From: Styela clava
Taxonomy: Eukaryota
Assembly: GCF_964204865.1 (NCBI RefSeq)
Contig: NC_135260.1
Location: forward strand, 5,704,001 to 5,768,000
Reading direction: 5' to 3'
DNA: 64,000 nucleotides
The position numbers and the translations under genes are program-made. Numbering within the stretch: position 1 is the stretch's first letter; the number at the start of each line of letters is the position of its first letter. The notes beneath the pieces are model-generated. The model did no database searches and was not told the origin of the DNA. It worked only from the letters and a program-made list of their open reading frames with translations. Positions 113-60,989 of this stretch are shown here, piece by piece.

Positions 113-2305
113 CATTTGGTATTGGTCTGAATGAAGCAGCACAATGCACTGACTGTCCAACTACAAAACTTGGAACAGAGAGCAAGAGTATCACATATGG
201 ACCAATTTATAAATACAACTGCTGGTGTGATTGGACAATACCAACAAGTATTGAGACAGATCATGAAACAGCAGTTGTTCTGTTGTTGCAGAATGTTTCA
301 CTGCCATTGACAACTGGTAGTGGACATACAGACTGCTCTGGAGAAATCAGATTCCCAAGTTAGATATATTTTAAAACTACTCAACTATTACTACACTACT
401 ACGTTATATACAATTCTAATATACAGAAACAATTAACAAAAAAAAACATTAATACCGGTAAATACAAAATTGTATCAATGCTTTTACAGGCACTGATGGA
501 TACAAATGTGAATTTGCAATCAACTACTGTCTTGTATTTGCAACTGCAGTAACCATTTGCAATATCAACAAAATCAGAGAGAAAATTCCAGTTGCAAATC
601 ACACCTGTGATTCAATTATTCCATGGAATAAAGCTGGAGGAAGTCCATATGAGATACAATACTATGCAGCAAACCGTGCTGATTACTCAAAATACTTCAC
701 AATACAATATCTTGTAATAGATTGCACACCAACAACATCTGCACTGAGTGAGTAATTTTTTTTTTATGCAATGCCTAATCATGTCTTATGCTCAAGTAAT
801 CACAGATATAGCAATCTATAAAGAACCATATTTATCACACCCGGGTGAGGTGGTGGGATGGGGGAACCTGAGATGTGTAACGTACAACAGGAGTGGGCAA
901 GGTTTTTGGACTAGGGGCCAGAAAGTTTGCCCACCTAGAATGACGGACCATGTAAGTATAACGTGAAAAGTTACATTTTATGAACGATACTTAGTGTTAC
1001 AAAAGCAAAAGTGGAAAACAATAAGCCTCGTGCCAAAACTAAATTAATCGTTTTAGTTTGGTTATGGCAGCATCAGGTGGGACAAATTAAACTACCAAAT
1101 AAGCCGGATTTAGTCCGCGGGCTGTAGTTTGCCCATGTCGGTCTTACAATGTCAACACAGTTTAAGTGTAACACCTTAACCACTAGGGTCAGGCGACCAT
1201 GCCCATATTGCTCTTGTTGAACAATATAACTCAATTTCAGGATGTGAGAATCAAACTTTTATTACAAAATTTTAGCCACGATAACTGAGCAAGCAACAAC
1301 AACTCATCCAAAAAATACATCATCTGATAAAATATACTTTGATTCAACCACTAAATCAACCAGAACATCTGGCAAAACTCAAAGTCCTATTAAAGACTGT
1401 GAATGCGACAGCACTGAAACATCACTGATCATTGCTATTCCAGTATCAGGAATTGCGGGTTTGACCATTGGAGTTTTGTTGACACTCATAATACCAAAGT
1501 AAGCATAGATGTTATAAATTATATGAATAACATTCATGCGCACAGTTACTCAAGTATGCTTGAATACAAGATATTAACAAAGTATTCAACCCAGTACTGT
1601 TAAGTCAGTTATATTCTTCATCTTCTGATTGTAAGACGATCAAAATTCTAACCCAGTCCAGTCTCAAGCTGCTAACCATGAGTTGACAAGATTTTGACCT
1701 CAACTCTCAACTCCACAAATAATAAAAATACCCACTGATTCTATCGCCTGATGTCTATTTTCTATTGAATCAAGTTGATTCGAAGTTTCAATCTAATTCA
1801 AAGTTTAAAGAAAAAACATAGTACTGAATCCAGATACTGCTGGATGACAATACTTTAACTATGGACACTGTGGAATTTGCAAACACTCTTAGTTTCATTT
1901 AAAAACGCTTATAACGATAGAATCTTGCAAACTCATTTCTTTAATAAAAACGACCATGTTTTCGATAACAGCCTCAAATACTGAATTCAAGTTTTTGTGT
2001 TGGGTCCCAGCGACGTAATGAAGCGGATGTCAAATTAAAAACGATCAAAAATCTTTCATTAACTTATATTTCTATCAAACACCAGATATTGCAACAACAA
2101 CGAAAAGAAACCAAAATACAAAGATTCAATGGAAATGGGAAGCATTCAACATCAGCAGCCAACTGTCCATGAACGAACAACATATGAAAACTACACACCA
2201 ACATCAGATGAAAGTGGATATGAAGTTCCGAATCAAGTTGATAACAAGAATGAACAACAATACGAGGTTATAATACCTGGAAAGGAATATCAATATGACA
2301 ACTGA
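113..2305 (+). CDS. Copy 1 (5'-partial): CUB-like type I membrane receptor with tyrosine-motif tail
   Basis: Exons 113-358, 490-747, 1276-1498, 2086-2305, all AG/GT-bounded and open in frame; exon 1 lies upstream of the window. Ectodomain CTDC...GPIYKYNCWCDWTIP...AVVLLLQNVSLP...DCSGEIRFP...YFTIQYLVIDC; TM LIIAIPVSGIAGLTIGVLLTLII; tail TYENY...SGYEVP...QYEVI...YQYDN*. Confidence 0.88.
770..1204 (-). mobile_element. tRNA-derived SINE remnant in intron 3, interrupted by the hAT MITE (also in copies 2, 6, 7, 10)
   Basis: The minus strand reads an A-box-like TG(A/G)CCCTAGTGGTTAAGG, then after the MITE a degenerate B-box CAGGTTCCCC and a CTTGAGCATAAGACA body motif. Confidence 0.5.
888..1141. mobile_element. 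hAT-type MITE in intron 3 (same insertion at 6808-7122, 34558-34873, 39746-40057, 59488-59795)
   Basis: Imperfect TIRs CAGGAGTGGGCAA...TTGCCCATGTC(G/A)G; TSD (A/T)CCTACAA, clearest in copy 2; GGCCCGCGGGC subterminal motif. Absent from the homologous site of copy 9 (~54335). Confidence 0.75.
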
Positions 2306-5392: not shown

Positions 5393-8293
5393 ATGTGGAA
5401 ACATTCAAAACCCTTCAATATCAAATGGATGTTCATCCAGATAATTGGTGAGATCTTACTTACATAAAGTTTTTACATCGTTACAGTTGTTTGTGTGACT
5501 GTAATGTGATCCGAATCTAATTTGTTAACAGCAAATTTTATTATAAAAAAAATATTTCCTATGAATTTACATCCAGATCCAAAGACAATAATTTTAAGAT
5601 CACATTTTGATAATATTAATATGATTTTCTAATTTCTCAAATGTTTAAAGACATGAATAAAAAAGTATTATATACATTAATAGCTGAAGACTTTGTACGT
5701 GTTACAGATATAAGGGCATTTCTAACTTTGCGACCCTTCATCAGAATATTGAAGATTTTCAACAAGTAAAATTTAACTTTCGAATGCAATTGATCCAGTT
5801 TTTGTATTCCTTGTAGTACTTACCATTGGTCTGAGTGGAGCCCAAAAATGCACTGATTGTCCCAGTGCAATACTTGGAACCGAAAGCAAGAGCATAACAT
5901 ATGGACCAAGTAATAAGCGCAACTGCCAATGTGATTGGACAATACCAACAAGTATGGACACAGATCATGAAACTGCAGTTGTTATGTTGTTACAGAATGT
6001 TTCATTGCCTTTGACAACAGATGTTGGCAGTAGTACAGAGTGCTCTGGAGAAATCAGATTCCCAAGTAAGTCCAATTCTTTTAAACAAAGGATACATTAG
6101 TTACTAGATCACAATTATTGGCCACAGCCACAGCCCGCCGCCAGAATTTCCAAAACCGGGGTTGTTCAAAATCTTTAACAGCTTCGGTGTGTAACGCCGA
6201 CGAAAACAATAGGCAGTTTTAGCAAAAGTAGGCATGTAAATTTGTACACAATAACATCTGGTACTCTCCTGTTTATCCAGTAATTTTCAAAAGAAGGTGG
6301 GCGTTGAATCTGAAACCCCATTCTGGCTGCGCTACTGTCCAAATATTAGATTGCCTGATACCACTAATAATTTATTCAAGAATACTAATGTGCTTTTTAC
6401 AGGCACTAATGTATACAAATGTGATCTTGTAGGCAACTACTGTCTTGCATTTGCAACTGCATCAAGCATTTGCAACATCAACAAAATCAGAGAGAAAATT
6501 CCAGTTGCAAATCACACCTGTGATTCAATCATTTCATGGAATAAAGCTGGGGGAAGCCCATACAAGATACAATACTATGCAAAATACTTTGCTGGTTACA
6601 CAAAATACTTCACAATACAATATCTTGTAATCGATTGTAGACCAACAACCACACCTGCACTCAGTGAGTAATTTTCGTTATTTTAGACAGTGCTCAATTG
6701 AGTCTTATGCTCAAGTAATCACAGATATACCAATCTATAAAGAACCATATTTATCACACCCGGGTGAGGTGGTGGAATGGGGGGAACCTGAGATGTGTAA
6801 CCTACAACAGGAGTGGGCAAGGTTTTTAGACTAGAGGCCAGAAATTTTGCCCACCCAGAATGGCGGGCCATGTTAGTATAACATAAAAAGTTACATTTTA
6901 TGAACGATACTTAGTGATACAAAAGCAAAAGTGGAAAACAATAAGCCTCATGCCAAAACTAAATTAATCGCAATCTCAACAAATTCTTTGAAGTATTTTT
7001 TAGCTAAAATATCAAAAATTTAAAAATTTAGTTTTAGTTTGGTTATGGCAGCATCAGGTGGGACAAATTAAACTACCAAATGAGCCGGATTTGGCCCGCG
7101 GGCTGTAGTTTGCCCATGTCGGTCCTACAATGTCAACACAGTTTAAGTGTAACACCTTAACCACTAGGGTCAGGCGACCATGCCAATATTGCTCTTGTTG
7201 AACGATATAACTCAATTTCGGGATGTGAGAATCAAACTTTCATTACAAAATTTTAGCCACGATAACTGAGCAAGCAACAACAACTCATCCAAAAAATACA
7301 TCATCTGATAAAATATACTTTGACTCAACCACTGAATCAACCAGAACATCTGGCAAAACTCAAAGTCCTATCAAAGACTGTGAATGCAACAGCACTGAAA
7401 CATCACTGATCATTGCTATTCCAGTATCAGGAATTGTGGGTTTGACCATTGGAGTTTTGTTGACATTCATAACACCAAAGTAAGCATAGATGGTATAAAT
7501 TAGATGAATATCATTTATGCGCACAGTTACTCAAGTATGCTTGAATACAAGATATTAACAAAGTATTCAACCTAGTACTGCTAAGTCAGGTATATCTTCA
7601 TCTTCTGATTGTAAGACGATCAAAATTCTAACCCAGTCCAGTCTCAAGCTGCTAACCATGAGTTGACAAGATTTTGACCTCAACTCTCAACTCCACAAAT
7701 AATAAAAATACCCATTGATTCTATCGCCTGATGTCTATTTTCTATTGAATCAAGTTGATTCGAAGTTTCAATCTAATTCAAAGTTTAAAGAAAAAAACAT
7801 AGTACTGTATCCAGATACTGCTGGAAGACAATATTTTAACTATGAACACTGTGGAATTTGCAAACATTTTTAGTTTCATTTAGAAATGCTTATGAGGATA
7901 GAATCTTGCAAACTCATAATTTTAATAATAACTAAGTCCGACCATGTTTTCGATAGCAGCCTCAAATACTGAATTCAAGTTTTTGTGGGGGGCCCAGTGA
8001 GGTAATGAAGCGGATGTCACAATTAAAAACGATCAAAAATCTTTCATTAACTTATATTTCTATCAAACACCAGATATTGCAACAACAACAAAAAAAAACC
8101 AAAGAACAAAGATTCAATGGAAATGGGAAGCATTCAACATCAGCAACCAAATGTTCACAAACGAACAACATATGAAAACTACACACCAACATCAGATGAA
8201 AGTGGATATGCAGTTCCGAATCAAGTTGATAACAAGAATGAACAACAATACGAAGTTATAATAACTGGAAAGGAATATCAATATGACAATTGA
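5393..8293 (+). CDS. Copy 2: intact CUB-like receptor, ~335 aa
   Basis: Exons 5393-5447, 5817-6065, 6403-6663, 7257-7479, 8074-8293 (1008 nt, open). Signal peptide MWKHSKPFNIKWMFIQIIVLTIGLSGA; tail YENY, GYAVP, QYEVI, YQYDN. Confidence 0.9.
6126..6337. mobile_element. Old MITE remnant in intron 2 (shared by copies 2, 3, 6)
   Basis: Right end CTGGCTGCGCTACTG and a degraded complementary left end; absent from the short intron 2 of copies 1, 4, 5, 7, 9, 10, 11. Confidence 0.45.
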
Positions 8294-20262: not shown

Positions 20263-22635
20263 ATGTGGAAACATTCAAAACTCTTCAATTGCAAATGGTT
20301 GTTTATGCAGATAATTGGTGAGATTTTGCTTACCGATACATAAAAGTTACACCTGAAAAAATAAGTTGCCATTTGTCAAACAAAAACATAATAGCCTGAA
20401 GAATTCTCATCCGAAGTCATTTAATGGAATAATAATTTTAATACTAGATTTTCATTATTATGGGATTGCTCAATTGTTTAAAAATAGGAATAATAAAGTT
20501 TTATATAATAACCTTGAATAACCATCAAAAGTATTTGCAAGATATTTCAATTTGATTAAAAAACTTATTTCTTTGTAGCACTAAGCATCAGTCTGAATGA
20601 AGCAGCACCATGCACTGATTGCTCCCATTCAATACTTGGAACAGAGAGCAAGAATATCAAATATGGACCAAGTAATGAACACAACTGCAACTGTGATTGG
20701 ACAATACCAACAAGTATGGACACAAATCATGAAACTGCAGTTGTTCTGTTGTTACAAAATGTTTCACTGCCAAGAACAATTGGTACTGGAAGTACAGAAT
20801 GCTCTGGAGCAATCAGATTTCCAAGTAAGCCGTATACTATACTATTTTACTAATACTATTCTAATATGAAGGAACAATAAAAAAACACATTAGTAAATAC
20901 ATAATTGTATCAATACTTTTACAGGCACTGATTCTCACAGATGTGATTTTGCAAGAAACAACTGTTTTGCATCTGCAACTGCATCAACCATTTGCAACAT
21001 CAACAAAATCAGAGAGAAAATTCCAGTTGCAAATCACACCTGTGATTCAATCATTCCATGGAATGAAGCTGGGGGAAGTCCATATGAGATACGATATTAT
21101 GCAAAAAACTTTGCTGGTTACACGAAATACTTCACAATTCAATATCTTGTGATAGATTGTAGATCTTCAACAACCACACCAAAACCAGGTAAGCAATATA
21201 CTTTACTGTTCGCAAATCTACACCAACACACATTTTTCTTATTCTCATACAAAGGTTAAATTTATATTCAGCAACAACAATGCAACAGAAACAAACAACA
21301 AAGGTTCCATTAACACTTGCAAGAATTATATGTGAAACAACAACTTTTGAAACCGCCAAAACTACTGGTATGAATGAATTAACAAGTTCAAGATTAATTT
21401 TGTATGTGAATAATCGATTAGGCAAACAAAATTAGTTACCTCCATATTGGTACACACACTTCTGGAGTGCCGTTGTTTTTAAGATTAGATACAGTTTGTA
21501 TGTAAACAACAGACTCGTGTGCAATGTTTGGCAGTTTAACACAGGGTGGCAAAATTGGGTACTCCCGTAGTATATGTATAATGGTAGGGTTAGGTCGTTT
21601 TTTTCCAATTTTCCAATATTCCAATATTCTAGTTCTATTACTATTTCGGGAACTGTCTATGTTAGACAAGTGAATATACCCCCTGCCCATAGACTTCAGT
21701 CCCTTTACACAAGTTATTTACCTACAAAATCAGTTACCTCCATATTGGTACAAGTACTTCTGGAGCGCACAAAATTGGGTAGGCAATGCCGAACCTTCCA
21801 AACAATAGTAGATCCTTACTCAGAGGTGACTGCTTGTTGTGGCCTTGTTGAGTGCGTAAGGCGCATAATTAGTCTTATAAAACGATTCAAAAATTGTGTA
21901 AAATTACAAGAAGCATAATAATTTAATTCTAGAAATGGCTACAAACACAAAACAAACTGCCAGTGATAAAAAATGTATTGAAAACTCAGATTCTACATCC
22001 CTAACAATGATTGCAGTAGGTGCAGCATCAGGATTAATTGTCGGAATCATCATTGGAGTTCTGACAACTTGCTTGATGCAGAGGTGAAATTACAGTTTCG
22101 TAAAATTAAGATATTTTAAGGTTAATATACTATTCAGTTTAGCTTGCTTGATGCTCAAAAAATTAAACACCTTCAAAACCTTCTCTAAGGGCTAACCAAT
22201 GCAATATCACCAGAATTTTGTTATTACTGAAAAGAATGTTTTTATTTTTGACGGAGATTGCCTTTTACACTCATTTGGTGGACAATCTGCTCAATACAAA
22301 ACAAAAAATCTTTATTTTGTATCATTTCAAATAAAATTAGTGAAACAAATAAAATTACATTGTTATTCCAGTCAAATAAATTATAAAAAGATCAGCGCAC
22401 CATAACACACATTATCAAAATTTATAGATTCTTGAGAAAAAAGAAATTGAAAAACTCAATGAAAACGCAGAGCAGTCAACAGCATCAATATAACGCCATG
22501 AAAAATGCAGCATATGAAAATCATGAACCAGCTTCAAACGAAAACGGATACGAAGTTATAATTCCAGTTGATAATAAGAATGAAAGACCATATGAAGAGA
22601 TAAAATGTGGGAAGGAATCTGAATATGAAAAATAA
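20263..22635 (+). CDS. Copy 4: intact CUB-like receptor with divergent stalk/TM and ITAM-like tail, ~339 aa
   Basis: Exons 20263-20317, 20579-20824, 20925-21188, 21272-21367, 21933-22083, 22428-22635 (1020 nt, open). TM MIAVGAASGLIVGIIIGVLTTCLM; tail AYEN...ENGYEVI-IPVDNKNERP-YEEI...EYEK*. Confidence 0.88.
21558..21769. mobile_element. Merlin-like MITE (~210 bp) in an intron of copy 4
   Basis: Imperfect ~23-bp TIRs GGTACTCCCGTAGTATATGT...GTACTTCTGGAGCGC; 8-bp TSD CAAAATTG. GG termini with an 8-bp TSD fit the Merlin/IS1016 superfamily (classification is inference). Confidence 0.7.
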
Positions 22636-23965
22636 GAGAAGAAATAAGCTCTATCAAAGCATTTTTTAGCTAATCACATGAAGACAATAAGAATGATGTG
22701 ACTCCATCAATTAGTCACTGGAAACTATATAAACAAACATGAACAAGAAAGTATAGTTCTCTTCCTCAAAATGAGCTATATTTGTTTGAGTTATTGAGTT
22801 ATTTTATACTGTTATACTGTAATTTTATCATTTATTTTTGTCAATCCATCATTTTCATAATGCAATATTGCATGTCAGTTACATCATCATTCACCACAAT
22901 ATTATTTCGTAATGCTTGCGTGGGTGATATGGCTCAGCCAGTAAAACCCTTTTCCAGCCATTATGCTCTAATGGGCTTCAGTACTCTTTGGTGTTGCATT
23001 CCGGGACTGGAAGTGCTTTGAAGCGATTTTTAACTTTTTATTGCTTTATTATGTTGTCATGTAACATGAGAAATAAGTTTAGACATGACGCTAAGTGTTA
23101 GTTATATGAATAGCATCGTTTTGAAAATGGCAAGTCAGTCGTGCATGAACTTGATGATGAAGGAAGCTGTGACAGTTTAGTTAGATACACCCTAAAACAG
23201 CAAGGAGTCCAGCAATTCTCCTGCAAATAGTTATCTTCCTTAGAATTCGAACCTGCGATAATCAGAGGTGCAAACATAATTTTAAAGCTTAGCTGACTCC
23301 CATTTCACACAAATATTACTATTACAGCATGAAATGACAAATTTCACAAAAACGAATAGTAGTTTCCAATATTCCAACTGTACTAGTGTTATATAAATAA
23401 AGTACATATCAAATATAAGAAAAAGACTTTGCTTCATGGGGCTGAACAAGGCTTTGCACAATGTACTGCTGGGATCGGTACTTAAGTGATTAGTTTACCT
23501 TTGACTGGCTAAGGTTGACCATGAATGAGTCCCCTAAGATCTGCTTCTGCCACAATGGCTAATCAATAAGATGTCATAGATAGGTGTTGTAACAATTAAA
23601 ATTTTACCAGATGCTCACAACACTTTTTTTATTCAGAAAAATTTTCAGACATGATCTTAAACATTAGTTTTCTAGGAATTTGCTAGCTATTTGTCAGTTT
23701 TTAGTTGTGTTTTCCAAATTTCAGGTATGAATCAAATATTTCAATAGAAAATTTGTCTTCTGAAGAGTTTAAGTTTAGTTGCATCAATCAAAAATCAATA
23801 TTGTAAATCAGCAACAGATAATATAACAAGCTAATATATAATAATATAACAAACACTCTCAATATCAGCATCAAACATTTTACAATGGTGAGGCTTAGAA
23901 TATATTTTTTCTGAAGTCAAGGGTCAGGGAGACATCCATTTTATTTTTAAAACCATAGTATATTT

Positions 23966-24744: not shown

Positions 24745-26110
24745 CTGCCCACCTTTTATGTCAGTGTAATATTATATTAAACAATTGATATATTACAGAT
24801 TTTAGTATCCTTGATTAGTATCCTTGAAAGAGAACGAAAGCTCAGCTGATATAAACCTAGAATACAAGTAATAGATTTCAGTAAAAAAGGTTGAGGTGAA
24901 TTCTTGAAAATTGACGTTACTCGTGTAATATAGTGTACAGTGTATTATGTATATTATCCCGCCTTGGTAAATATTTCTAATAGTCTAACAGATTTATTAA
25001 AGATTTTGGATCCTTGAGAGAGACCTAAAGATTAGCAGATATAAACTTAAAAAGTGAGAGCTTAAAATAAAATGTTTTTGTAAGGAAGGTAAAAGTAAAT
25101 TCTTGACAGTGACGTTACTTGTGTTTTAGGTGGGGAATCCCGCCTTGGTTAAATAATTCCATCGGTTTAACAGATATATCGAAGATCTAAGATTCTTAAA
25201 AGGGATCTTGAGATCAGCAGAAATAAACTTGGAATCTTAGAGCTCAAAATAAAAGATTTCAGTAAAGAAGGTTAAGGTAAATTCTTGACAGTGACTTAAC
25301 TAATTTGTTTTAAAGTGTGACCCTGCCTTGATTCAATATCTCAGTCGATAAATTTAAGGTTTTTCGACAGTTAATAAATTAAAAGTTTCAGATCCTTAAA
25401 AGGCAGATTGAGCGCAGTAGATATAAAGTTATAATGTAATGTTCCAAATTATAATATCCTAGCAAAGAAAGCTGAAGGTTTCTTGACAGTGGCATTACTC
25501 ACTTGCATTATACACAACCACCTTTTATGTCAGTGAGATATCATATTGAACATATGTTATATTGTTATATTACAGATTTTGGTATCTTTGAAAGAGACCT
25601 AAAGATCAGCAGATATGAACTTAGAATGCAAGATCTCAAAATAAAAGATTTCAGTAAAGAAGGTTAATAAGGTAAATGCTTGACAGTGACGTTACAAGTG
25701 TATTAGCATGGGGATCCCGCCTTGGTTAAATATTACTAACAATCTAACAAATATATTGAATATTTTAGATTCTTGAAAGAAACCTAAAGTTCAGTAGAAA
25801 CAAACTTAGAATCTTAAAGCTCAAAATAGAAGACTCGTAAAGAAGATAAGGGGTAGATTCTTGACTTTACTCACTTGCATTGAACTGTGACCACATCTTG
25901 GTTCAATATCTCTGACAGTTGATAAAATGAAGATTTTTGGTTATTTGAAAGTTAGCTCAAGCTCAGTAGAAATATATTTAGAATGTAACATCTTGAAATA
26001 AAATATTTTTGTAAAGAAGACTGAGGTAAATTCTTGGAAGTGACATTACTCATCTGCATTACAGTCTGGGCTGCATCTTAGATTTAAAATCTCTACCTAA
26101 GAGACTTCAG
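24745..26110. repeat. Degenerate ~185-bp tandem repeat, about 7 units
   Basis: Core TCCTTGAAAGAGACCTAAAGATCAGCAGATATAAACTTAGAAT...CAGTAAAGAAGGTTAAGGTAAATTCTTGACAGTGAC...CCGCCTTGGT recurs at about 24820, 25011, 25193, 25393, 25585, 25770 and 25942. Confidence 0.8.
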
Positions 26111-26688
26111 AGAAAATAGATATGGATTCAATATTAAAAATGATGACCTGCCAAAGCAGCATATGGATTCTCCTTGGTAAAAACATTTTCCACATAGAAT
26201 ACTAATAGGATTTATTCATATTTATACTGGAAGAGAGCAAATCATCTTGTCATATGACAAATTATGGCCTCTATGCCAGTTCCATGTTGGATATGGGAAT
26301 AGTTAACTAGTTTATCTCCTACAAGATTAAAACTTATGAACCAGAGCAGGGTAATCAGAAGTATTATTATTATATATTACCAAATATTTAGTACCCAAAG
26401 CAGCACATATTACTGCAATTCTAGATGTAGTGCTCAAAAGTGGGCTTAACCTGTTCTGGTAGGACAACAAATATCTTGTACCAGTCCATGAAAAGCAATT
26501 GATTGAAGGTGAACGGTACAGATGCTATGAACACACAACTGCACCGATATAGTAAAACTAGCAGTCAAAATGAAGAAATCCGAAATGATCTTTATATATT
26601 AATTGTGAATATTGAAAATATTACACCAATCTACAGTAAGCATAAATTATACAGAATGAGAAATGAATACCTTGTATATTTTTTTCAG

Positions 26689-28160
26689 CTATTATGATCA
26701 ATGTGAATGAAGCATATCAATGCCCTAGTTGTCCCAAAATAACACTTGGAACAGAGAACAAGAATATCACATATGGACCAAGTAATGAGCGGGACTGCCA
26801 ATGTGATTGGACAATACCAACAAGTATGGCCACAGATCATGAAACTGCAGTTGTTCTGTTGTTACAAAATGTTTCATTGCCAATGACGGCTGGTAGTGGA
26901 AGTAGAGACTGCTCAGGAGAAATCAGATTTCCAGGTGAGTATTCAATACTCTTACAAAAGTAAAACTAGTTGTTAATGAAAATGAACTTTGTGCAGGTGC
27001 TAGTGGACACAGATGTGATTTTGCAAACTACCAGTGTATTGTTTATACAACTGAATCAACCATTTGCAACATCAACATAATCAGAGAGAAAATTCCAGTT
27101 GCAAATCACACCTGTAATTCAATCATTCCATGGAATAATGCTGGAGGAAGTCCATATAAGATACAATACTATTCCAGAGGCTATGTTGGTTACACAAAAT
27201 ACTTCACAATACAATATCTTGTGGTAGATTGCAGATCTCCAACAACCACTTTTAAACCATGTAAGTCATAAACAGCAAAAACATTCAGTTTAACAGTGAA
27301 ATATCCAACACTAAAAATGAATCTTTTTTTTTCAAAATACAGCAACAGGAAATGGATGGGAAACAACAACAAAGAATCCAATAGAAATTTCGACAACAGA
27401 AAAAACTGAACGGACTACAAAAAACAAAAGTAATAAAAGTTTATTTGTCGAAACAATAGCAATCATCCAATACACAATCATAGTCAAAATTATTATAAAT
27501 TTTAGTTACCGAAGCTGAGCAGCGAACAACACAATCTGATTCCGGCATAACTAATTCTCATTCCATATGTGATTTGGACAAAAACATCACCATCACCACG
27601 GGAATCAATGGAAGTTCTGATTCACTGATGATCGCAATTCCAGTTTCAGGAATAGTTGGTTTTATCTTTGGAGCTTTGTCAATGTCTTTCATACAAAGGT
27701 AAGAAGTAAAATAACAGTAGCAATATTTTCCCCTCGTTACTTTCAATTTGTATATTGCTTTTGAATATTGTTTTGAGAAATAGGCATAAGTCATTCCGGG
27801 TTTTGTTCGAATATGATTAAACAATATGCTATTAAATATTTTTAACCCAGGTATTGCAACAAGAACAAGAAGAAATTGAAGAACAAAGATTCAATGGAAA
27901 TGGGAAGCATTCAACATCCAGAGCCAACTGTCCATAAACGAACAACATATGAAAACTACACACCAACATCAGATGAAAGTGGATATGAAGTTCCGAATCA
28001 AGTTGATAACAAGAATGAACAAAGTGGATATGAAGTTCCGAATCAAGTTGATAATAAGAATGAACAAAGTGGATATGAAGTTCCGATTCAAGTTGATAAC
28101 AAAAATGAACAACAATACGAAGTTATGACAACTGGAAAAGAATATGAATATGAGAATTAA
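26689..28160 (+). CDS. Copy 5: CUB-like receptor with three tail repeats; family-type exon 1 not found
   Basis: Exons 26689-26934, 26997-27260, 27343-27429, 27506-27698, 27851-28160, all open in frame. Tail has 3x SGYEVP(N/I)QVDNKNEQ. No MWKHSK exon between 22636 and 26688. Confidence 0.8.
27978..28112 (+). repeat. Coding 45-bp tandem repeat (3 units) in the cytoplasmic exon of copy 5; also 3 units in copies 6 and 8, and 2 units in copies 7, 9, 10
   Basis: AGTGGATATGAAGTTCCGAATCAAGTTGATAACAAGAATGAACAA = SGYEVPNQVDNKNEQ. Confidence 0.9.
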
Positions 28161-29265
28161 CAGCTCGGACAGATCCTTTTCCCAGTCACAAAACTTTGCC
28201 ACAGAAATTTTGAAACATAAATTTTGGCAAAAATTTGAACTAAACTTTGATCAGCCCTACTGAATAATTTAGAAGTTGTTTACATCTGTAAAATATTCAT
28301 TTACAACATTTTACATATATTATACCAATTTACAATTATCTGTAATAACTACTTTGAAAAAACTGTACATGCACTGTTTTAACTGGGTGAAACTTTAGCT
28401 AAGCAGCCACTCAGCATATCATACCATGTGCATGAGTAGATTATCAATAGAACAATCGAGATCTCTTGCATGAGATGTCGAGACGACTATGCTTCTGAGG
28501 CATTAACAGTCTACTCACAATAAAAACTTAAATGTGAAATTACGAACAAACAATCAAAAACAACTGAATAATTAATTAATTAAGTAACTTCAAATAATTA
28601 CTGCTAAGTAGAAGTATATTTAAAACCCTTCCTTATTAAGGACCATTTGATAACCCACAAATGTCAGTATTTTTACAAGTTTCTTGATAGCGTTAAATTT
28701 GAAACTGATTCTAAATTCTAAGAATGACTTGCCTGATTTCTGATTTCTGTTTTGTTTCCTTTTTCAGTTTCCTCTTCTAACATTTATGTTGTCACACAGA
28801 TTCTGTAAAATGAATGAAATAAATTATACATATGTCTGATATAGTTGGGAAGTTTTTATAAGCAAAAGTCTGGTTAGTAAAGAAGATTTATTCAATGAAA
28901 AAGGCAGGTTATATTCCAAGAAATCTTTCACTCTTATGAAGACTTAACCAAAATAGTAGAAAAGAAAAGTAAATCACAATAAGGATTGTTTTTCTTCATT
29001 TAAGAAGTAAGAAGAGTTATCAGTGGCTGTAATCACAAATCATAATAAAACTCTGACTCTGATCAAAGCCTTATTTACTGAACTATATGACTGCTGGAAT
29101 AAAAAAAAACATAATTTTTCCAGTTTCCAACTTTACCAACTCCTTATTGTCAGTTAAAGGCGAAAAAAAAGAATTTGATCTCAAAGGCTAAATAATCTAC
29201 CATTTATGGTGACTCAAGATATAGTTCCAACTTGAAATAAAGAAACACGTGAATTCATTGCTTAA

Positions 29266-33056: not shown

Positions 33057-36002
33057 ATGTGGAAACATTCAAAACTCTTGAATTGCAAATGGTTGTTTAT
33101 CCAGATGATTGGTGAGATCGTACTTACGGTACATATACAAACCATTCAAAGATGGGAAGAGATAACAATATTTAAACATGTGTTATTTGAAGCATTTTCA
33201 AATCAATTACAATTTCATTGATTTTAAGTTGTACTATTGATTACTGTTAAAGTGATCAAATTCGTTAATATGAGTCCTTAATATAGCTAAATAAAAATTT
33301 GCCCAATAAATTCTCATCAGTTTCACGTCCAGTTTGAACGAAAAATTTTCAAAATGATACAATTTTGCGCAACGTGTGTAAGCCTGTCACCAATGCTAAG
33401 ATGATCAATTGGAACATCTTCTAGTGAGAACATAAATTTTGTGCAAAACGGCCTAGTTTTCGGAAACTTTTGTGTACAATTGTGCATAAACACAAGTTCA
33501 AGTGTTAAAAAATCAAATATTGATTCCATTCTCATAGGAGTAATTAAGAAATACATATAATATTTTTTGAGTAACCTTGCATAAATTATTTTTATAGCTC
33601 TTAACATCAGCATGAGTGAAGCCGCACAATGCACAGATTGTAAAAACCTAATACTTGGAACAGGGAGCAAGAATATCACATATGGACCAAGTAATGAAGA
33701 CAACTGCAACTGTTATTGGACAATACCAACAAGTATGGACACAGATCATGAAACTGCAGTTGTTCTGCTGTTACAAAATGTTTCACTGCCAATGACAACT
33801 GGTAGTGGAAGTACAGACTGCTCTGGAGAAATCAGATTCCCAAGTAAGTGCAATACTTGAATACGATCACAATTATTGGTCTACAAGCAAGACCGCAGGC
33901 CGTGGCAAGCATTTTCAAAAATCATAAATATCCATGTAAAGCCGACAAAAAACAATCGGCAGTTTTAACAAAAGTATGCATGTAAATTTATACACAAAAA
34001 CAGCTGGTACTCTTCCGGTAATCCAGAATTTTTGTATAAGGGGTTGAACCTGAAAACCCCTCTCTGAATGCGCCAATGTCTACAAATATTAGTTTTCCTG
34101 GTTCGACTGTAATTTATTCAAGAATACTAATGTGCTCTTTACAGGCACTTATGGATACAAATGTGAATTTTCAAGCAATTACTGCCTTGCATTCGCAACT
34201 GAATCAACCATTTGCAACATCAACCAAATCAGAGAGAAAATTTCAGTTGTAACTCACATCTGTGATTCAATCATTCCGTGGAATAAAGCTGGAGGAAGCC
34301 CATACAGGCCCATCTGTAATACAATACTATGCAAAAAACCCTGCTGGTTACACAAAATACTTCGCAATACAATATCTTGTGATAGATTGCAGACCAACAA
34401 CCACACCTGCACTCAGTGAGTAATTTCATTTTTTATGTAATGCTTAATCATGTCTTATGCTCAACGAGTCACAGATATACCAATCTATAAAGAACCATAT
34501 TTATCACACCTGGGTGAGGTGGTGGGATGGGGTGAAGCTGAGATGTGAAACGTACAACAGGAGTGGGCAAGGTTTTGGACTAGAGGCTAGAAAGTTTGCC
34601 CACCTAGAATGACGGGCCATGTAAGTATAACGTAAAAAGTTAATATTTTATGAACGATACTTAGTGTTACAAAAGCAAAAGTGGAAAACAATAAGCCTCG
34701 TGCCAAAACTAAATTCCATCGCAATCTCAACAAATTCTTTGAACTATTTTTTAGCTAAAATATCAAAAATTTAAAAATTCAGTTTCAGTTTGGTTATGGC
34801 AGCATCAGGTGGAACAAATTAAATTAACAAATGAGCCGAATTTGGCCCGCGGGCTGTAGTTTGCCCATGTCAGTCCTACAATGTCAACACAGTTTAAGTG
34901 TAACACCTTAACCACTAGGGCCAGGCGACCATGTCCATATTGCTCTTGTTGAACGATATATCTCAATTTCAGGATGTGAAAATCAAACTTTTATTACAAA
35001 ATTTTAGCAACGGTAACTGAGCAAGCAACAACAACAGCAACTCATCAAAAAGATAAATCATCTAATAAAATATACTTTGACTCAACCACTGAATCAACCA
35101 GAACATCTGGCAACGTTCAATGTTCAACTGAAAACACAGAATGCAGCAGTTCCCAAACATCACTGATCATTGCTATCCCAGTATCAGGATTCATGGGTTT
35201 GATCATTGGAGCTTTGTTAATGTTCATAATACCAAGGTAAGCATAGATATTGTATAATAAATGAATGTCAATGAAAATGCATAAATTACCAAATGGGCAA
35301 TCTATCAAGTACAAAAAAAATGTGTGCCACTCTCCACCTGAGAGTGATACCTGCTTCAAGGATGACAAAATTCAAATACAAGTTTGAAAAAATAAAAACC
35401 AATCTCAGCCAATTTTGTGTAACAAATTATTTTGTTAAAAATGTTGCCATTTGCAAAATCCAAGTTTCATGGCAAACTTTTGGATACATTTATTGACTCT
35501 GATGACAAAAAAATTTATATTAACTACAGTTTCGGATCCAATTCCAACTAAATATGCCAAACTTGACTGTTTATCGTAGATTCAGTGAAGTCAGAAGCAG
35601 ATATTAAAACAGCAAATGATTACCGGTAGTCTCAATTACAGTCAATACATATAGTAATCATTAACTTTGATTATATTTCTATCAAACACCAGGTATTGCA
35701 ATAACAACAAGAAGAAACCAAAGAACAAAGATTCAATGGAAATAGGAAGCATTCAACATCAGCAGCCAACTGTCCATGAGCAAACAACATATGAAAACTA
35801 CATACCAACATCGGATGAAAGTGGATATGAATATCTGAATCAAGTCGATAAAAAGAATAAACAAAGTGGATATGAATATTTCAATCAAGTCGATGAAAAG
35901 AATGAACAAAGTGGATATGAAGTTCCGAAACCAGTTGATAACAAGAATGAACAACAATATGAGATTATAACAACTGGAAAGGAATATCAATATGACAATT
36001 GA
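33057..36002 (+). pseudogene. Copy 6: frameshifted CUB-like receptor (10-bp insertion in exon 3)
   Basis: Exons 33057-33111, 33598-33843, 34145-34415, 35008-35236, 35693-36002 (1111 nt, not a multiple of 3). Extra CCCATCTGTA at 34309-34318 relative to the paralogs; the shifted frame stops at TGA 35018-35020, before the TM. Confidence 0.82.
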
Positions 36003-38677: not shown

Positions 38678-41145
38678 ATGTGGAAACATTCAAAACTCTT
38701 CAATTGCAAATGGTTAATTATGCAGATAATTGGTGAGATCTCACTTACATGAACACTTTTGTATTTCAAATTTGACAAAGAAACGACTTTTGATATTCAC
38801 TTCGGAAATATTTATCAATCAAATTCTCAGCCTTATTCAACCAAAAATATATTAATTTTGATAGCTTACACTCTTCAATTTCCCAATGTTTGAAAAATTG
38901 GATAGTGAATAATTAGATCATATACCGTGGAGAGAAGACTTATTCAACTCACAATATTTAAAATCTGTATTTTTGAATATGAGATATTTTTCTAGCACTC
39001 GAAATTGGTCTGAATGAAGCAGCAAAATGCATGGATTGCTCCAATATCATACTTGGAACAGAGAGCAAGAATATAACACATGGACCAAGTAATAAATACA
39101 ACTGCAACTGTGATTGGACGATACCAACAAGTATGGACACAGATCATGAAACAGCAGTTGTTCTGTTGTTACAAAATGTTTCACTTCCAATAACAACAGG
39201 TAGTGCGAGTACTACAGACTGCTCTGGAGATATCAGATTTCCAAGTAAGCTATATTATACAATTTTACTAATGCTATTCTAACATGAAGGAACAATAAAA
39301 AAACACATTAGTAAATACATAATTGTATCAATACTTTTATAGGCTCTGATGCATACAAATGTGAATTTCAAAGCAACTACTGTCTTGCATTTGCAACTGC
39401 ATCAACCGTTTGCAACATCAGCAAAATCAGAGAGAAAATTCCAGTTGCAAATCACACCTGTGATTCAATCATTACATGGAATGAAGCTGGAGGAAGCCCA
39501 TACAAGATACAATACTATGCAAAAAACTCTGCTGGTTACACAAAATACTTCACAATACAATACCATGTAATAGATTGCAGACCAACAACCACACCTGCAC
39601 TCAGTGAGTAATTTCATTTTTTATGTAATGCTTAATCATGTCTTTTGCTCAATGAATCACAGATATACCAATTTATAAAGAACCATATTTATCACACCCG
39701 GGTGAGGTGGTGGGATGGGGGGAACCTGAGATGTGTATCGTACAACAGGAGTGGGCAAGGTTTTTAGACTAGAGGCCAGAAATTTTGCCCCCCTAGACCT
39801 AGCATGACCACCATGTAAGTATGACGTAAAAAGTTACATTTTTTGAACGATACTTAGTGTTACAAAAGCGAAAGTGGAAAACAATAAGCCTCGTGCCAAA
39901 ACTAAATTTAATCGCAATCTCAACAAATTCTTTAAACTATTTTTTAGCTAAAACAACAAAATTTAGTTTTAGTTTGGTTATGGCAGCATCAGGTGGGCCA
40001 AATTAAATTACCAAACAAGCTGTATTTGGCCCGCGGGCTGTAGTTTGCCCATGTCAGTCCTACATCGTCAACACAGTTTAGGTGTAACACTTTAACCACT
40101 AGGGCCAGGCGACCATGTCCATATTGCTCTTGTTAAAACGATATAACACAACTTTAGGATGTGAGAATCAAACTTTTATTACAAAATTTTAGCAACGGTA
40201 ACTGAGCAAGCAACAACAACAGCAACTCATCAAAAAGATACATCATCTAATAAAATATACTTTGACTCAACCACTGAATCAACCAGAACATCTGGCAACG
40301 TTCAATGTTCAACTGAAAACACAGAATGCAGCAGTTCCCAAACATCACTGATCATTGCTATCCCAGTATCAGGATTCATGGGTTTGATCATTGGAGCTTT
40401 GTTAATGTTCATAATACCAAGGTAAGCATAGATATTGTATAATAAATGAATGTCAATGAAAATGCATAAATTACCAAGTGGGCAATCTATCAAGTACAAA
40501 AAAAATGTGTGCCACTCTCCACCTGGGAGTGATACCTGCTTCAATGATGACAAAATTCAAATACAAGTTTGAAAAAATAAAACCCAATCTCAGCCAATTT
40601 TGTATAACAAATTATTTTGTTGAAAATGTTGCCATTTGCAAAATCCAAGTTTCATGGCAAACTTTTGGATACATTTATTGACTCTGATGACAAAAAAATT
40701 TATATTAACTACAGTTTCGGATCCAATTCCAACTAAATATGCCAAACTTGACTGTTATTGTAGATTCAGTGAAGTCAGAAGCAGATATTAAAACAGCAAA
40801 TGATTACCGGTAGTCTCAATTACAGTATCAAGTAAATACATATGGTAATCATTAACTTTGATTATATTTCTATCGAACACCAGGTATTGTAACAACATGA
40901 AGAAACCAAAGAACAACAATTCGATGGAAATGGGAAGAATTCAACATCAGCAGCCAACTGTCCATGAAAGAACAACATATGAAAACTACACACCAACATC
41001 AGATGAAAGTGGATATGAATATCTGAATCAAGTCGAAAAAAAGAATGAACAAAATGGATATGAAGTTCCGAATCCAGTTGATAACAAGAACGAACAACAA
41101 TATGAGATTATAACAACTGGAAAGGAATATCAATATGACAATTGA
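38678..41145 (+). CDS. Copy 7: intact CUB-like receptor with ITIM-consensus SGYEYL, ~351 aa
   Basis: Exons 38678-38732, 38996-39244, 39343-39603, 40193-40421, 40884-41145 (1056 nt, open). Tail YENY, SGYEYL, NGYEVP, QYEII, YQYDN. Confidence 0.9.
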
Positions 41146-46386: not shown

Positions 46387-47800
46387 ATGAGGAAACATTC
46401 AAAACTCTTCAATTGCAAATGGTTGTTTATGCAGATAGTTGGTGAGATCCCACTTACATAAATAGTTCCAAATCAAGAAATAAATGTACATTTGTTACCC
46501 AAAAACATAGTAGCCTGATGAATTCTCATCCAAAGTCATTCATGAAATAATAATTTTAATATTAGATTTTCATTAATATAAGATTTCTAAATTGTTTAAA
46601 AAGAAGAGTAATGGAGTTTTATACAATATAATTCTCAACCATGTATTAGATTGAGAAAATATCAATTCTATACATATAAACTTGTTTTGGGCTTTATGAG
46701 ACTGATGAAAATTGGATGGATTTCGCAATGTTGTAATTGTAAAAACTTATTTCTTTATAGCACTAAGCATCAGTCTGAATGAAGCAGCACCCTGCACTGA
46801 TTGTTCAAATCCAATACTTGGAACAACCACTTCTAAACCAAGTAAATCTTAAACAGCATAAAAAATTCAGTTCAAAAGTAAAACATCCAATCTTGAAATA
46901 AACTTTCCTTTCAAATTACAGCAACAACAAATGGATGGGAAACAACAACAAAATATCCAGAAGAAATTTCGACAACACTCAAAGCTGAACAGACTACAAA
47001 GCTGAACGGTCTACAAACGGAAATTCCGACAACACTGAAAGCTGGACCAAATACAAAAGACAAAAGTAATGAAATTTTATTTGTCAAAACAATAGCAATT
47101 ATCCAATACACAATCATAATAAAAACTAAACTTCATAAATTTCAGTTAGTGGAGCTGAGCAGCAAACAACACTATCTGATTCAGACAGAACTGAATCTCA
47201 TTCAACAACTGATTTGGACAAAAACATCACAGTTACCACGGGAACCAATGGAAGTTCTGATTTATTGACAATTGCAATTCCATTGTCAGGAATAGTTGCT
47301 TTTATCTTGGGAGCTTTGTCAATCTTTGTCATACAAAGGTAACAAGTAAAACAACACTTAGTAGCAATAATTTCTCCACAATACTTTCACTTTGAATATT
47401 GTTTTGAAAATTTGGCGCAATTTCAAGGTTTCGTTTGGATGTGGTTCAACAATATGCTAATAAATATTTTTATTAATATTTTCAACCCAGGTATTGCAAC
47501 AAAAACAAGAAACCGAAAAAGAAAGATTCAATGGAAATTGGAAGCATCCAACATCAGCAGCCAACTGTCCATGAACGAACAACATATGAAAACTACACAC
47601 CAACATCAGATGAAAGTGGATATGAAGTTCCGAATCAAGTTGATAACAAGAATGAACAAAGTGGATATGAAGTTCCGATTCCAGTTGATAACAAGAATGA
47701 ACAAAGTGGATATGAAGTTCCGATTCCAGTTGATAACAAGTATGAACAACAATATGAGGTTGTGAGAAGCGGAGCAGAATACCAATATGAAAATGCGTGA
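46387..47800 (+). CDS. Copy 8: ectodomain-deleted paralog (signal peptide, stalk, TM, tyrosine tail), ~260 aa
   Basis: Exons 46387-46441, 46761-46841 (5' of exon 2 fused to 3' of exon 3: ...CTDCSNPILGT/TTSKP), 46922-47065, 47146-47338, 47491-47800 (783 nt, open; all splice sites intact). Confidence 0.8.
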
Positions 47801-58228: not shown

Positions 58229-60989
58229 ATGTGGAAACATTCAAAACTCTTCAGTTGCAAATGGTTGTTTGTGCAGATAATTGTTGAGATCTTACTTACA
58301 TTAAGTTTAGTTACACATTCTGCTGTTACACAACCAACTCTGATGGGTATTATTAGTTGGTATTCGAAAGTTTTAAATTATTTACAATTACAGTAATTTG
58401 AAATTGTCTCATCAAATCATAATAAGTAACTTCTTTAAAATCAAATCGCGGACAATAAATTGAGGTTATTTAACTTTTGTTTTCAAAACATATTTCACAT
58501 CCAGATTCAATATTAAAATATTATACAATTTTAACTACCTCGTCTTTCAAATACACGAATGTTTAAAAAAGGAATAACTAGGTTTTATACAATTATTCAT
58601 GGATTCAAGAATCTGTAATACAATTGAAAAAGGATTATAAAATATATTTGATTTATAAATGTGTTTTAAAATTCGTAGTACTTCCAATTAAAAAAAATAA
58701 GTTATATAGCAAATGAATAACTTGATCCCTTTTCAGCATTTAGTATTGATCTGAATGAAGCAGCACCCTGCACTGATTGCTCTAATATCATACTTGGAAC
58801 AGAGAGCAAGAATATCACATATGTCCCAAGTAATGAATACAACTGCAACTGTGATTAGACAACACCAACAAGTATGGAGACAGATCATGAAACTGCAGTT
58901 GTTCTGTTGTTACAAAATTATTCATTGCCAAAGACAACTGGTACTGGAATTACACGCTGCTCTGGAGAAATCAGATTTCCAAGTGAGCTATATTATCATA
59001 CCACTCAACTATTACTATACTATTGTAATACACAGCAACAATTGTTAAAAACATTAGTGAATACAAAATTGTATCAATACATTTACAGGTACTGATTCTC
59101 ATAAATGTGAATTTGCAATCAACTACTGTCTTGTATTTGCAACTGCAGTAACCATTTTCAATATCAACAAAATCAGAGAGAAAATTCCAGTTGCAAATCA
59201 CACCTGTGATTCAATTATTCCATGGAATAAAGCTGGAGGAAGTCCATATGAGATACAATACTATGCAGCAAACCGTGCTGATTACTCAAAATACTTCACA
59301 GTACAATATCTTGTAATAGATTGCACACCAACAACATCTGCACTGAGTGAGTAATTTTTTTTTTATGCAATGCCTAATCATGTCTTATGCTCAAGTAATC
59401 ACAGATATACCAATCTATAAAGAACCATATTTATCACACCCGGGTGAGGTGGTGGGATGGGGGGAACCTGAGATGTGTTACCTACAACAGGAGTGGGCAA
59501 GGTTTTTAGACTAGGGGCCAGAAAGTTTGCCCACCTAGAATGACGGACCATGTAATTATAACGTGAAAAGTTACATTTTATGAACGATACTTAGTGTTAC
59601 AAAAGCAAAAGTGGAAAACAATAAGTCTCGTGCTAAAACTAAATTAATCGCAATCTCAACAAATTCCTTGAACTATTTTTAGCTAAAATATAAAAATTTA
59701 GTTTTAGTTTAGTTTAGTTGGCAGCATCAGGTGGGCCAAATTGAACTACCAAACGATCCGGATTTGGCCCGCAGGCTGTAGTTTGCCCATGACAGTCCTA
59801 CAATGTCAACACAGTTTATGTGTAACACCTTAACCACTAAGGCCAGGCGACCATGCCCCTATTGCTCTTGTTAAAACCCTATAACTCAACTTTGGGATGT
59901 GAGAATCAAACTTTTATCACAAAATTTTAGCAACGGTAAGTGAGAAAGCAACAACTCATCAAAAAGATACATCATCTTATGAAACATTCCCAACCACTGA
60001 ATCAACCAGAACCACTGACAACATTCAATGTTCCATTGAAGACTGTGAATGCACCAGCACCCAAGTATCACAGAATACAGAAGAATCAGAGAATACAGTA
60101 CCAAACTATTCTCAAACATCACTGATTATTGCTATTCCAGTGTCAGGAATTATGGGTTTGATCATTGGAGCTTTGTTGATGTTTATAATACCAAGGTAAG
60201 CATAGATGTTATAAATTATATGAATACCATTTATGTTACTCAAGTATGTTTGAATACAAGATATCAACAAAGGATTCAACCCAGTACTGTTAAGTCAGTT
60301 ATATTTCTATCTTCTGATTGTAAGACAATCAAAATTCTAACCCAGTCCAGTCTCAAGCTGTTAACCATGAGTTGACAAGATTTTGACCTCAACTCTCAAC
60401 TCCACAAATATTAAAAATGACCACTGATTCTATCGCCTGATGTCCATTTTCTATTGAATCAAGTTTTACCAATCTAATTCAAAGTTTAAAAAAAAAAACT
60501 TGGTACTGTATCCAGATACTGTTCGATGACAATATTTTAACTATGAACACTGTGCTTTGCAAACTCATAATTTTAATAATAACTAAGTCCGACCATGTTT
60601 TCGATAGCAACCTCAAATACTAAATTCAAGTTTTTGTGTGGGGCGAAGTGATGTAATCAAGTGGATGTCAAAATTAGAAATGTTCAAAAATCTTTCATTA
60701 ACTTATATTTCTATCAAACACCAGATATTGCAAATACAACAAGAAGAAACCAAAGAACAAAGATTCAATGGAAATGGGAAGCATTCAACATCAGCAGCCA
60801 ACTGTCCATGAACGAACAACATATGAAAACTACACACCAACATCAGATGAAAGTGGATATGAATATTTCAATCAAGTCGATAAAAAGAATGAACAAATTG
60901 GATATGAAGTTCCGAATCCAGTTGATAACAAGAATGAACAACAATATGAGATTATAACAACTGGAAAGGAATATCAATATGACAATTGA
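58229..60989 (+). pseudogene. Copy 10: pseudogene of the CUB-like receptor family
   Basis: Exon remnants 58229-58283 (donor GTGAG changed to TTGAG), 58737-58982 (conserved Trp TGG changed to TAG at 58856-58858), 59089-59346 (conserved Cys changed to Phe), 59931-60195 (disrupted by indels), 60725-60989. Confidence 0.87.

Follow-up and report, generated by a model that had tools for sequence, protein, structure and literature searches.

An in-frame 45-bp tyrosine-motif array of changing unit number in the cytoplasmic tail of a tandem receptor-like gene family in Styela clava

Locus and gene structure of LOC120346958

We analysed a 64,000-bp stretch of the Styela clava genome (contig NC_135260.1 of assembly GCF_964204865.1, forward-strand positions 5,704,001 to 5,768,000; hereafter the window), which holds family copies numbered 1 to 10. 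Our focus was copy 5, LOC120346958, whose last exon encodes a cytoplasmic tail with three tandem 45-bp units, each carrying a tyrosine motif. LOC120346958 belongs to a large tandem family of type I membrane glycoproteins that is restricted to this lineage. The family plan is a signal peptide, an outer domain of about 155 residues with ten conserved cysteines, a threonine-rich stalk, a single transmembrane helix and a cytoplasmic tail. Comparison of tails and their flanks shows that whole units are added to and removed from the coding minisatellite in the tail exon, in register, at a higher rate than substitutions build up in the flanks. The window exons correspond to P0003, a protein of 384 residues identified in the outer-domain profile search as XP_039272691.2 (uncharacterized protein LOC120346958 [Styela clava]), and the gene structure given here follows the RefSeq database models rather than a newly spliced model. 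The features of copy 5 are as follows, in window coordinates.

26122..26175, plus strand: exon 1, start codon and start of the signal peptide (MDSILKMMTCQSSIWILL); from the open frame, the RNA joint 26175>26688 and the N-terminus of P0003
26688..26938 (end approximate), plus strand: exon 2 (exon A), first half of the outer domain, cysteine-rich (C..C..LGTE..C.CDWTIP..AVVLLLQNVSLP..CSGEIRFP); from P0003 and the RNA joint
26998..27253 (start approximate), plus strand: exon 3 (exon B), second half of the outer domain; from P0003 and the RNA joint leaving 27253 (run X5)
27343..27429, plus strand: threonine-rich stalk exon; from the joints 27253>27343 (X5) and 27429>27506 (X5, X6) and from P0003
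27506..27698, plus strand: stalk and transmembrane exon (LMIAIPVSGIVGFIFGALSMSFI, then QR); from the joints 27429>27506 and 27696>27849 (cut +2), both in X5 and X6
27851..28160, plus strand: last exon, the entire cytoplasmic tail; codons from 27852, stop codon at 28158-28160
27948..27956, plus strand: fixed YEN (a YxN motif) ahead of the array; from translation, and kept in 23 of 25 tails genome-wide
27978..28112, plus strand: three 45-bp units in codon register (27978-28022, 28023-28067 and 28068-28112), SGYEVPNQVDNKNEQ twice, then SGYEVPIQVDNKNEQ
28113..28157, plus strand: terminal segment QYEVMTTGKEYEYEN (YxxM, then YxYxN); from translation and the motif inventory

P0003 and the window together give the layout of a type I single-pass protein, with a signal peptide, one transmembrane helix and a basic cytosolic side. 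Topology was read directly from the sequence, Pfam returning only transmembrane-region matches such as TMEM154 and EphA2_TM. A hydrophobic segment of 23 residues is followed by QRYCNKNKKKLKNK; because this helix precedes QR and the basic start of the tail, we place the tail in the cytoplasm.

Four public runs were aligned over 26000-28500 as Logan contigs: the probable RNA runs X5 (2018) and X6 (2023), each from a separate study, and the DNA-type runs X1 and X2. The RNA-type contigs contain the spliced joints 26175>26688 (X5), 27429>27506 (X5, X6) and 27696>27849 (X5, X6), all GT..AG, and these joints are absent from X1 and X2. The splice-spanning contigs in X5 and X6 therefore join the transmembrane exon to the tail exon in RNA, and the joint at 27849 (cut +2), together with the stop codon at 28158-28160, confirms the tail-exon borders proposed in the initial annotation of this DNA. 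Contig pieces end at 27908 and restart at about 28073-28090, so that none spans the array, and no 45-bp insertion or deletion was listed.

An in-frame 45-bp array in the tail exon

Read from 27852, the tail exon is YCNKNKKKLKNKDSMEMGSIQHPEPTVHKRTTYENYTPTSDE-SGYEVPNQVDNKNEQ-SGYEVPNQVDNKNEQ-SGYEVPIQVDNKNEQ-QYEVMTTGKEYEYEN-stop, that is, a YEN, three units of the form SGYEVPxQVDNKNEQ and a closing YEVM...YEYEN; the remaining two frames of 27851-28160 are closed by many stops. Tandem Repeats Finder reported the copy-5 array at 27976-28112 with a period of 45, 3.0 copies, 95% matches and 0 indels, and the units differ from one another by 1-2 nt. A 23-nt core of the unit has 15 matches in the window at ≤3 mismatches, against 0.00 expected from 100 shuffles, in a surrounding sequence that is AT-rich (about 33% G+C). 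Head-to-tail units within the 10-100 bp range, read in frame, make the array a coding minisatellite.

Within the 45-bp unit, the same program also found a weak sub-period of 22-23 bp (27977-28098, 62-65% matches), and the unit may itself have arisen long ago by duplication of an element half its length (SGYEVPN / QVDNKNE).

Tail arrays across the genome

The copy-5 tail, searched in six frames against the entire 377-Mb assembly, gave 47 matches. Nearly all lie on the plus strand at C14:5.61-5.77 Mb, where the window occupies 5.704-5.768 Mb, with a smaller group on the minus strand at C14:6.16-6.19 Mb and one match on C13. From the 30 loci returned by this search we took 25 distinct tails containing 75 units, and all tail counts below refer to this set. 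One unit is present in 9 tails, two in 8, three in 4, four in 1, five in 2 and 24 in 1; the only four-unit tail, that of L007, ends in a premature stop. Older RefSeq models add arrays of 6 units (P0031), 4 units (P0021) and 3 units (P0033).

The 24-unit array belongs to L012 (C14:5616184-5617425; L012:1486-2742; L031:8170-9430), about 88 kb upstream of the window. It forms a single open frame of 419 codons with the unit pattern ABBBBCDEFGBCCCCHCCCCCDFI, open outer-domain and transmembrane exons lie upstream of it, and the tail intron has canonical GT/AG borders.

Two tails are interrupted: L007 (C14:5629907-5630299) reads SGY-stop within a fifth unit, and L020 (C14:6173010-6173174, minus strand) has a stop after NKNE.

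Unit number changes faster than the flanks

A maximum-likelihood tree of all 25 rows was computed from sequence outside the repeat, namely 200 nt of intron, the part of the exon that precedes the array and 300 nt beyond the array. Many of its deeper forks are unresolved, and unit changes were compared only within well-supported groups. In one such clade (L002/L006/L007/L008/L010, 100/100), the tails carry 3, 5, 4, 2 and 2 units with flanks only 0.7-2.4% apart. Copy 5 itself (L001, three units) pairs with L003 (five units) at 100/100, with flanks 1.8% apart, and L005 (three units) pairs with L016 (two units) at 100/98, with flanks 4.4% apart. The proposal that the array is expandable is thus borne out: whole units are gained and lost in register, and counts differ between paralogs whose flanks diverge by 0.7-2.4%.

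Unit number also differs between two RefSeq versions of one locus. The older and newer proteins of LOC120347069 (P0021 and P0020) are identical at 328 of 335 aligned residues and are separated by a single 15-residue gap in the array, giving 4 versus 5 units; both agree at the outer-domain residues that separate them from P0003. The accession series suggests that the two versions represent different assemblies and individuals. From these comparisons, expansion of the in-frame array is well supported between paralogs and, between individuals, supported by a single locus.

Could these differences instead be artefacts of assembly or annotation? No contig spanned the array, and a RefSeq locus identifier may stand for different genes in different versions (P0031 and P0035 have one LOC number yet differ throughout), both of which would favour such an explanation. 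Against it, the differing counts occur at distinct loci with distinct flanks within one assembly, arrays of 45-225 bp are presumably much shorter than the long reads behind it, and P0021 and P0020 share diagnostic outer-domain residues yet differ by exactly one unit. We consider an artefactual origin highly improbable, and hold the anatomy and the copy-number dynamics described here with great confidence. The initial annotation attributed the changes to unequal crossover; gain and loss may proceed by replication slippage or by unequal exchange between units, and the data fit both.

Other copies in the window

The tail exons of the remaining copies are listed below; copy 3 has no tail exon in the window.

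2087..2305, plus strand: copy 1 tail exon, one unit (YEVP); window matches
8075..8293, plus strand: copy 2 tail exon, one unit (YAVP); window matches
22435..22638 (borders approximate), plus strand: copy 4 divergent tail (NGYEVIIPVDNKNERPYEEI...), one unit; same type as P0006/P0048
35694..36002, plus strand: copy 6 tail exon, three units (YEYL, YEYF, YEVP); Tandem Repeats Finder, window matches
40885..41145, plus strand: copy 7 tail exon, two units (YEYL, YEVP); Tandem Repeats Finder, window matches
47492..47800, plus strand: copy 8 tail exon, three units (YEVP in all three); Tandem Repeats Finder, window matches, model P0049
55018..55278, plus strand: copy 9 tail exon, two units, the first of only 42 bp; Tandem Repeats Finder, window matches
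60726..60989, plus strand: copy 10 tail exon, two units (YEYF, YEVP); Tandem Repeats Finder, window matches

These agree with the unit counts first read from the sequence (one in copies 1, 2 and 4; two in 7, 9 and 10; three in 5, 6 and 8), and each of the named variants YEVP, YAVP, YEYL, YEYF and YEVI was found among the window copies. The statement that the arrays are always in frame is true of all of them, the 42-bp unit of copy 9 reflecting an in-frame loss of 3 bp.

Several copies depart from the family plan. In copy 8 (46761-47800; P0049), a signal peptide, stalk, transmembrane helix and three-unit tail are present and nearly the whole outer domain is missing, with no exon A or exon B match in the copy 8 region in the window search; from this layout, copy 8 resembles a transmembrane adaptor. 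An in-frame stop interrupts exon A of copy 10 (58751-58987) (…NCNCD-stop-TTPTS…), and the RefSeq model P0047 begins downstream at METDHETAVV, so that copy 10 either has a truncated N-terminus or is a pseudogene. In copy 6, the exon B match is split between 34117-34308 and 34283-34420, which overlap but are read in different frames, and this suggests that the outer domain has undergone a frameshift or a small duplication. The intergenic DNA separating copies 4 and 5 holds a 182-bp tandem repeat at 24956-25295 (1.9 copies, 77% matches).

Receptor family and outer domain

An exon-B profile made from 8 window copies was searched against 1.84 billion representatives and gave 18 matches at E ≤ 0.001. 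The ten best-fitting single-stretch matches resemble the family, and all six that were looked up by name are from S. clava. The other eight were multi-stretch matches: five that were scanned (P0008, P0013, P0014, P0015 and P0017) carry Flg_new, bacterial Ig-like or fn3 repeats, and such matches were therefore rejected as additive chance, while P0012, P0016 and P0018, read by sequence, have short internal repeats unlike the family. Word searches agreed, with 35 of 35 matches to P0003 being S. clava proteins, all named 'uncharacterized protein', and 19 of 19 matches to the 24-unit tail likewise from S. clava. The family was not found outside S. clava in the collections searched, from which other styelid ascidian proteomes may be missing, and no paper on it was found within the literature searched. 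A 2025 run with a different organism label (X11) contains 8% of the sampled copy-5 gene words and might come from a related species with the family.

The outer domain had no Pfam match, whether as single exons or in 31 full members, which gave only transmembrane-region or chance matches. A profile search of PDB sequences yielded nothing below E = 0.1 for it, the matches there lying in the transmembrane region. A CUB domain was also considered: PF00431 gave no match, with E limits of 10 for the exons and 1 for the 31 full proteins, and hhalign of the family profile with 8 S. clava CUB domains returned a probability of 0.5% over 24 aligned columns. Because of this low probability, we do not call the outer domain CUB-like.

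In total, the family comprises at least 35 protein clusters with at least three tail classes: the YEVP-repeat class; a long acidic class with IYGT, IYD(T/P)T and (S/C)xYAVV motifs; and the copy-4 class, with P0010 as an outlier. Two RefSeq models, P0032 (LOC120347104, 624 residues; two outer domains and two transmembrane segments) and P0011 (LOC144429792, 229 residues; exon A twice), look like fusions of two neighbouring family genes.

Tyrosine motifs and a docking reading of the tail

Phosphotyrosine motifs are read by SH2 domains of differing preference: Grb2 binds pYxN, Crk, Nck, RasGAP and Abl bind pYxxP, and p85 binds pYxxM, and YxxPhi motifs are sorting signals bound by AP-2. The immunoreceptor tyrosine-based inhibitory motif (ITIM) has the consensus (S/I/V/L)-x-Y-x-x-(I/V/L) and the activation motif (ITAM) the consensus YxxL/I-x6-8-YxxL/I.

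At the level of sequence, the cytosolic tail contains Grb2-type Y-x-N sites on both sides of the array: a YEN precedes it in 23 of 25 tails and a terminal Y(D/E)N follows in 21, copy 5 having both. YxxP motifs number three in copy 5 and one to seven per tail across the set, YEVP being the commonest unit (50 of 74), and several YxxP motifs thus lie in a disordered cytosolic region, the arrangement of the BCAR1 substrate domain. The 24-unit tail of L012 has a different composition, having lost both YxN sites and carrying 14 S-x-Y-x-x-I, 3 YxxM and 7 YxxP motifs, with most of its units YEVI or YEVM. The S. clava genome has at least 38 SH2 matches, counted by exon, that pass the Pfam cut-off.

The ITIM consensus occurs in 6 of 25 tails, with 14 occurrences in L012, and is absent from the copy-5 tail. 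A canonical ITAM is found in none of the 25, and relaxing the spacing to x6-12 admits only L012. The initial annotation had taken paired YxxI motifs for an ITAM, which does not hold, since no tail is canonical and the pair in copy 4, YEVI-x10-YEEI, has a spacing of 10. Its assignment of YxN, YxxP and S-x-Y-x-x-L motifs to named consensuses fits, with the ITIM part left ambiguous. In the YEYL and YEYF first units (35819-35917 in copy 6, 40995-41040 in copy 7 and 60840-60885 in copy 10), a change of V to Y two residues after the unit tyrosine (Y+2), alongside P to L or F at Y+3, gives Y-E-Y-(L/F)-N and places a second tyrosine in a YxN context, a Y-x-Y-x-N pattern shared with the terminal YQYDN/YEYEN. 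An ITIM is therefore not the sole reading, and these units may be Grb2-type rather than ITIM-type. Overall, to judge from the motifs, docking at YxN and YxxP sites is a reasonable reading, consistent with what is known of such motifs, the ITAM assignment is wrong and the ITIM assignment ambiguous.

We regard a tandem-family receptor whose minisatellite tail acts as a multivalent phosphotyrosine docking scaffold as the best explanation overall, and a probable one; for the tail itself, we lean towards phosphotyrosine docking as its role. In such a receptor, a Src- or Abl-kind kinase would phosphorylate the invariant tail tyrosines, a Grb2-type adaptor would be drawn to the YxN sites on either side of the array, and every YEVP unit would attract an SH2 protein of the Crk, Nck or RasGAP type. 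The number of units would then set valency, and hence the strength or threshold of the signal, and changes at Y+2 and Y+3 (V to Y; P to L, F, I or M) might redirect a unit to a YxYxN reader or to a YxxPhi/ITIM-like one.

The same tyrosines could serve in sorting rather than signalling. YxxPhi motifs (YEVI/V/M, YEYL/F) would bind the AP-2 mu2 subunit and send the protein, which might be a scavenger or phagocytic receptor, into endocytosis or to the lysosome, with the acidic units as spacers. At least one YxxPhi is present in 22 of 25 tails and 18 are present in the 24-unit tail, as this would predict. However, the commonest unit, YEVP, is no YxxPhi, the array is flanked by YxN motifs in most tails, and a sorting signal multiplied up to 24-fold has no obvious use. 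We think sorting quite unlikely as the main role of the motifs.

Constraint within the unit and the meaning of unit number

The 45-bp unit has the consensus S-G-Y-E-V-x-x-x-V-D-x-K-N-x-Q. In 73 full units, a set that leaves out one 14-residue unit, in L014, and one cut short, in L020, the tyrosine is kept throughout, with no nonsynonymous allele and a single TAC codon; the valine at Y+6 is also kept in all 73, with synonymous change only, and the glycine at Y-1 varies once. The position with the most residue states is Y+3 (P in 50, I in 14, L in 5, M in 3 and F in 2 of 74 units counted), and the other variable sites are Y+4 (N/I), Y+5 (P/Q), Y+8 (N/K) and Y+11 (E/K). Single-codon changes do alter Y+3, for example CCG>CTG, as had been suggested. 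The Y+3 codon takes 9 of 35 nonsynonymous steps, a binomial P of 8e-5 when counted naively and 0.007 on a conservative 6 of 32. YEYL and YEYF are restricted to a single clade (99/99), where they invariably open the array; YEVI and YEVM occur, among the 25 tails, only in L012, and YEVL once, in L003. Describing Y+3 as the most changeable position is thus fair, its enrichment is suggestive only, and a selected switch of motif class goes beyond the evidence.

A number of results weigh against a signalling role for the array. Allele steps within the unit comprise 35 nonsynonymous and 8 synonymous changes, a per-site ratio of 0.99 that, on this crude count, carries no overall signal of selection. 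The excess at Y+3 falls to about 0.10 after correction for 15 codons, and the Y+3 variants trace to few events. Premature stops occur in 2 of 25 tails (L007 and L020) and lesions in cluster members (the exon A stop of copy 10 and the exon B frame break of copy 6), and because of these part of the family may be decaying. The RNA contigs cover the splice and both ends of the exon and leave the copy-5 unit count unread, and some of the RNA reads may come from the twin locus L003, which is 99% alike in the tail. No protein model with the 24-unit array was found among proteins of 230-733 residues, and no S. clava phosphoproteome paper was found within the literature searched.

Much of this would be expected if the array were a neutral coding minisatellite in a disordered tail, its tyrosine kept for structure, for trafficking or by homogenisation, and its copy number without signalling meaning. 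The ratio near 1, the stops and lesions and the loss of significance at Y+3 all favour that explanation, as do the identical adjacent units in L006, L007 and L012, which show homogenisation, itself enough to keep residues alike. Opposed to it, the tyrosine, Y+6 valine and Y-1 glycine persist across the 25 arrays, even in single-unit tails at the ends of long branches; every array is in frame, even where 3 bp have been lost; and every tail class of the family is rich in tyrosine motifs. In addition, P0010, only 31% identical to P0003 overall, retains YENY and GEYEV in the form TYENY..PT...GEYEV, followed by three YEN(L/I) motifs, and this deep conservation is more telling than the unit-level counts. 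We consider neutrality rather unlikely. Were the array neutral, it would still be a clean case of constraint on frame and tyrosine in a coding minisatellite.

Functional tuning by unit number or by Y+3 is possible though doubtful. Elsewhere, multivalent phosphotyrosine tails set signalling thresholds, as in BCAR1, LAT and nephrin, and the array looks as if it could be a dial for signalling strength. In the furthest-reaching version of this idea, the array would be a germline dial of valency: paralogs and alleles with anything from 1 to 24 docking units, of differing class, would give each receptor its own threshold, for example for adaptor condensation, with selection acting on repeat number as on EPIYA number in CagA and a possible role in self/non-self or microbe recognition by haemocytes. 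As a whole we hold this version to be unlikely. The question of how valency relates to output is nevertheless directly testable here, in a natural graded series of 1, 2, 3, 4, 5, 6 and 24 near-identical units on one scaffold. Tunicates are the closest invertebrate relatives of vertebrates, and this undescribed receptor family may belong to tunicate innate recognition.

Comparison with known systems

Among the closest parallels to the YEVP units is the substrate domain of BCAR1/p130Cas, which, in passages of PMC5043372, likewise has many closely spaced YxxP motifs (YDVP there, YEVP here) in a disordered region, their number varying between lineages (6-25 by species). The same passages describe the binding of CRK SH2 to pYxxP as ancient, predating animals, and report that certain transmembrane proteins of choanoflagellates have several YxxP repeats on their cytosolic side and that their pYDVP peptides bind CRK SH2; these proteins resemble the S. 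clava ones in placing the repeats on single-pass membrane proteins. Unlike BCAR1, the S. clava protein has no N-terminal SH3 or C-terminal FAT-like domain and no sequence relationship was detected; because the 31 members have no Pfam domain beyond the transmembrane region, we do not count them in the BCAR1 family. The S. clava units differ further in that they are near-identical tandem copies of 45 bp, present in different numbers in recent paralogs, and probably in alleles, of one receptor family.

Bacterial EPIYA effectors such as CagA (PMC4623810 and PMC3593179) carry a tandem tyrosine-phosphorylation segment of variable copy number, and in CagA duplication of EPIYA-C is reported to increase SHP2 binding dramatically. 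Those effectors are secreted bacterial mimics of host motifs, whereas the S. clava protein is the animal's own membrane receptor, and the two share no sequence similarity.

As a clustered, fast-evolving set of type I proteins with several tyrosine-tail classes on one outer domain, the family also resembles ITIM/ITAM paired immune receptors. Tyrosine-phosphorylated immunoreceptor signalling has a precedent in stolidobranch ascidians, a haemocyte glycoprotein of Halocynthia roretzi with two ITAMs being tyrosine-phosphorylated according to part of a review (PMC5465252, citing Takahashi 1997). Unlike paired immune receptors, the S. clava outer domain is neither Ig nor lectin by Pfam, and the tails bear no canonical ITAM and only an occasional ITIM.

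Transmembrane adaptors of the LAT/GAPT kind combine a short basic juxtamembrane stretch with a disordered tail that carries several Grb2-type YxN motifs and other SH2 motifs. The S. clava tail shares the basic stretch and the multiple YxN sites, and copy 8 is like these adaptors also in the loss of its outer domain. Most S. clava members, unlike them, have a full outer domain, and no homology was detected, the Pfam GAPT match being confined to 1 of 31 members at E = 0.0087, far below the curated cut-off level. The S. clava tail is best filed as a putative multi-tyrosine docking tail, a known kind, here built as a live coding minisatellite on an undescribed receptor family known only from S. 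clava.

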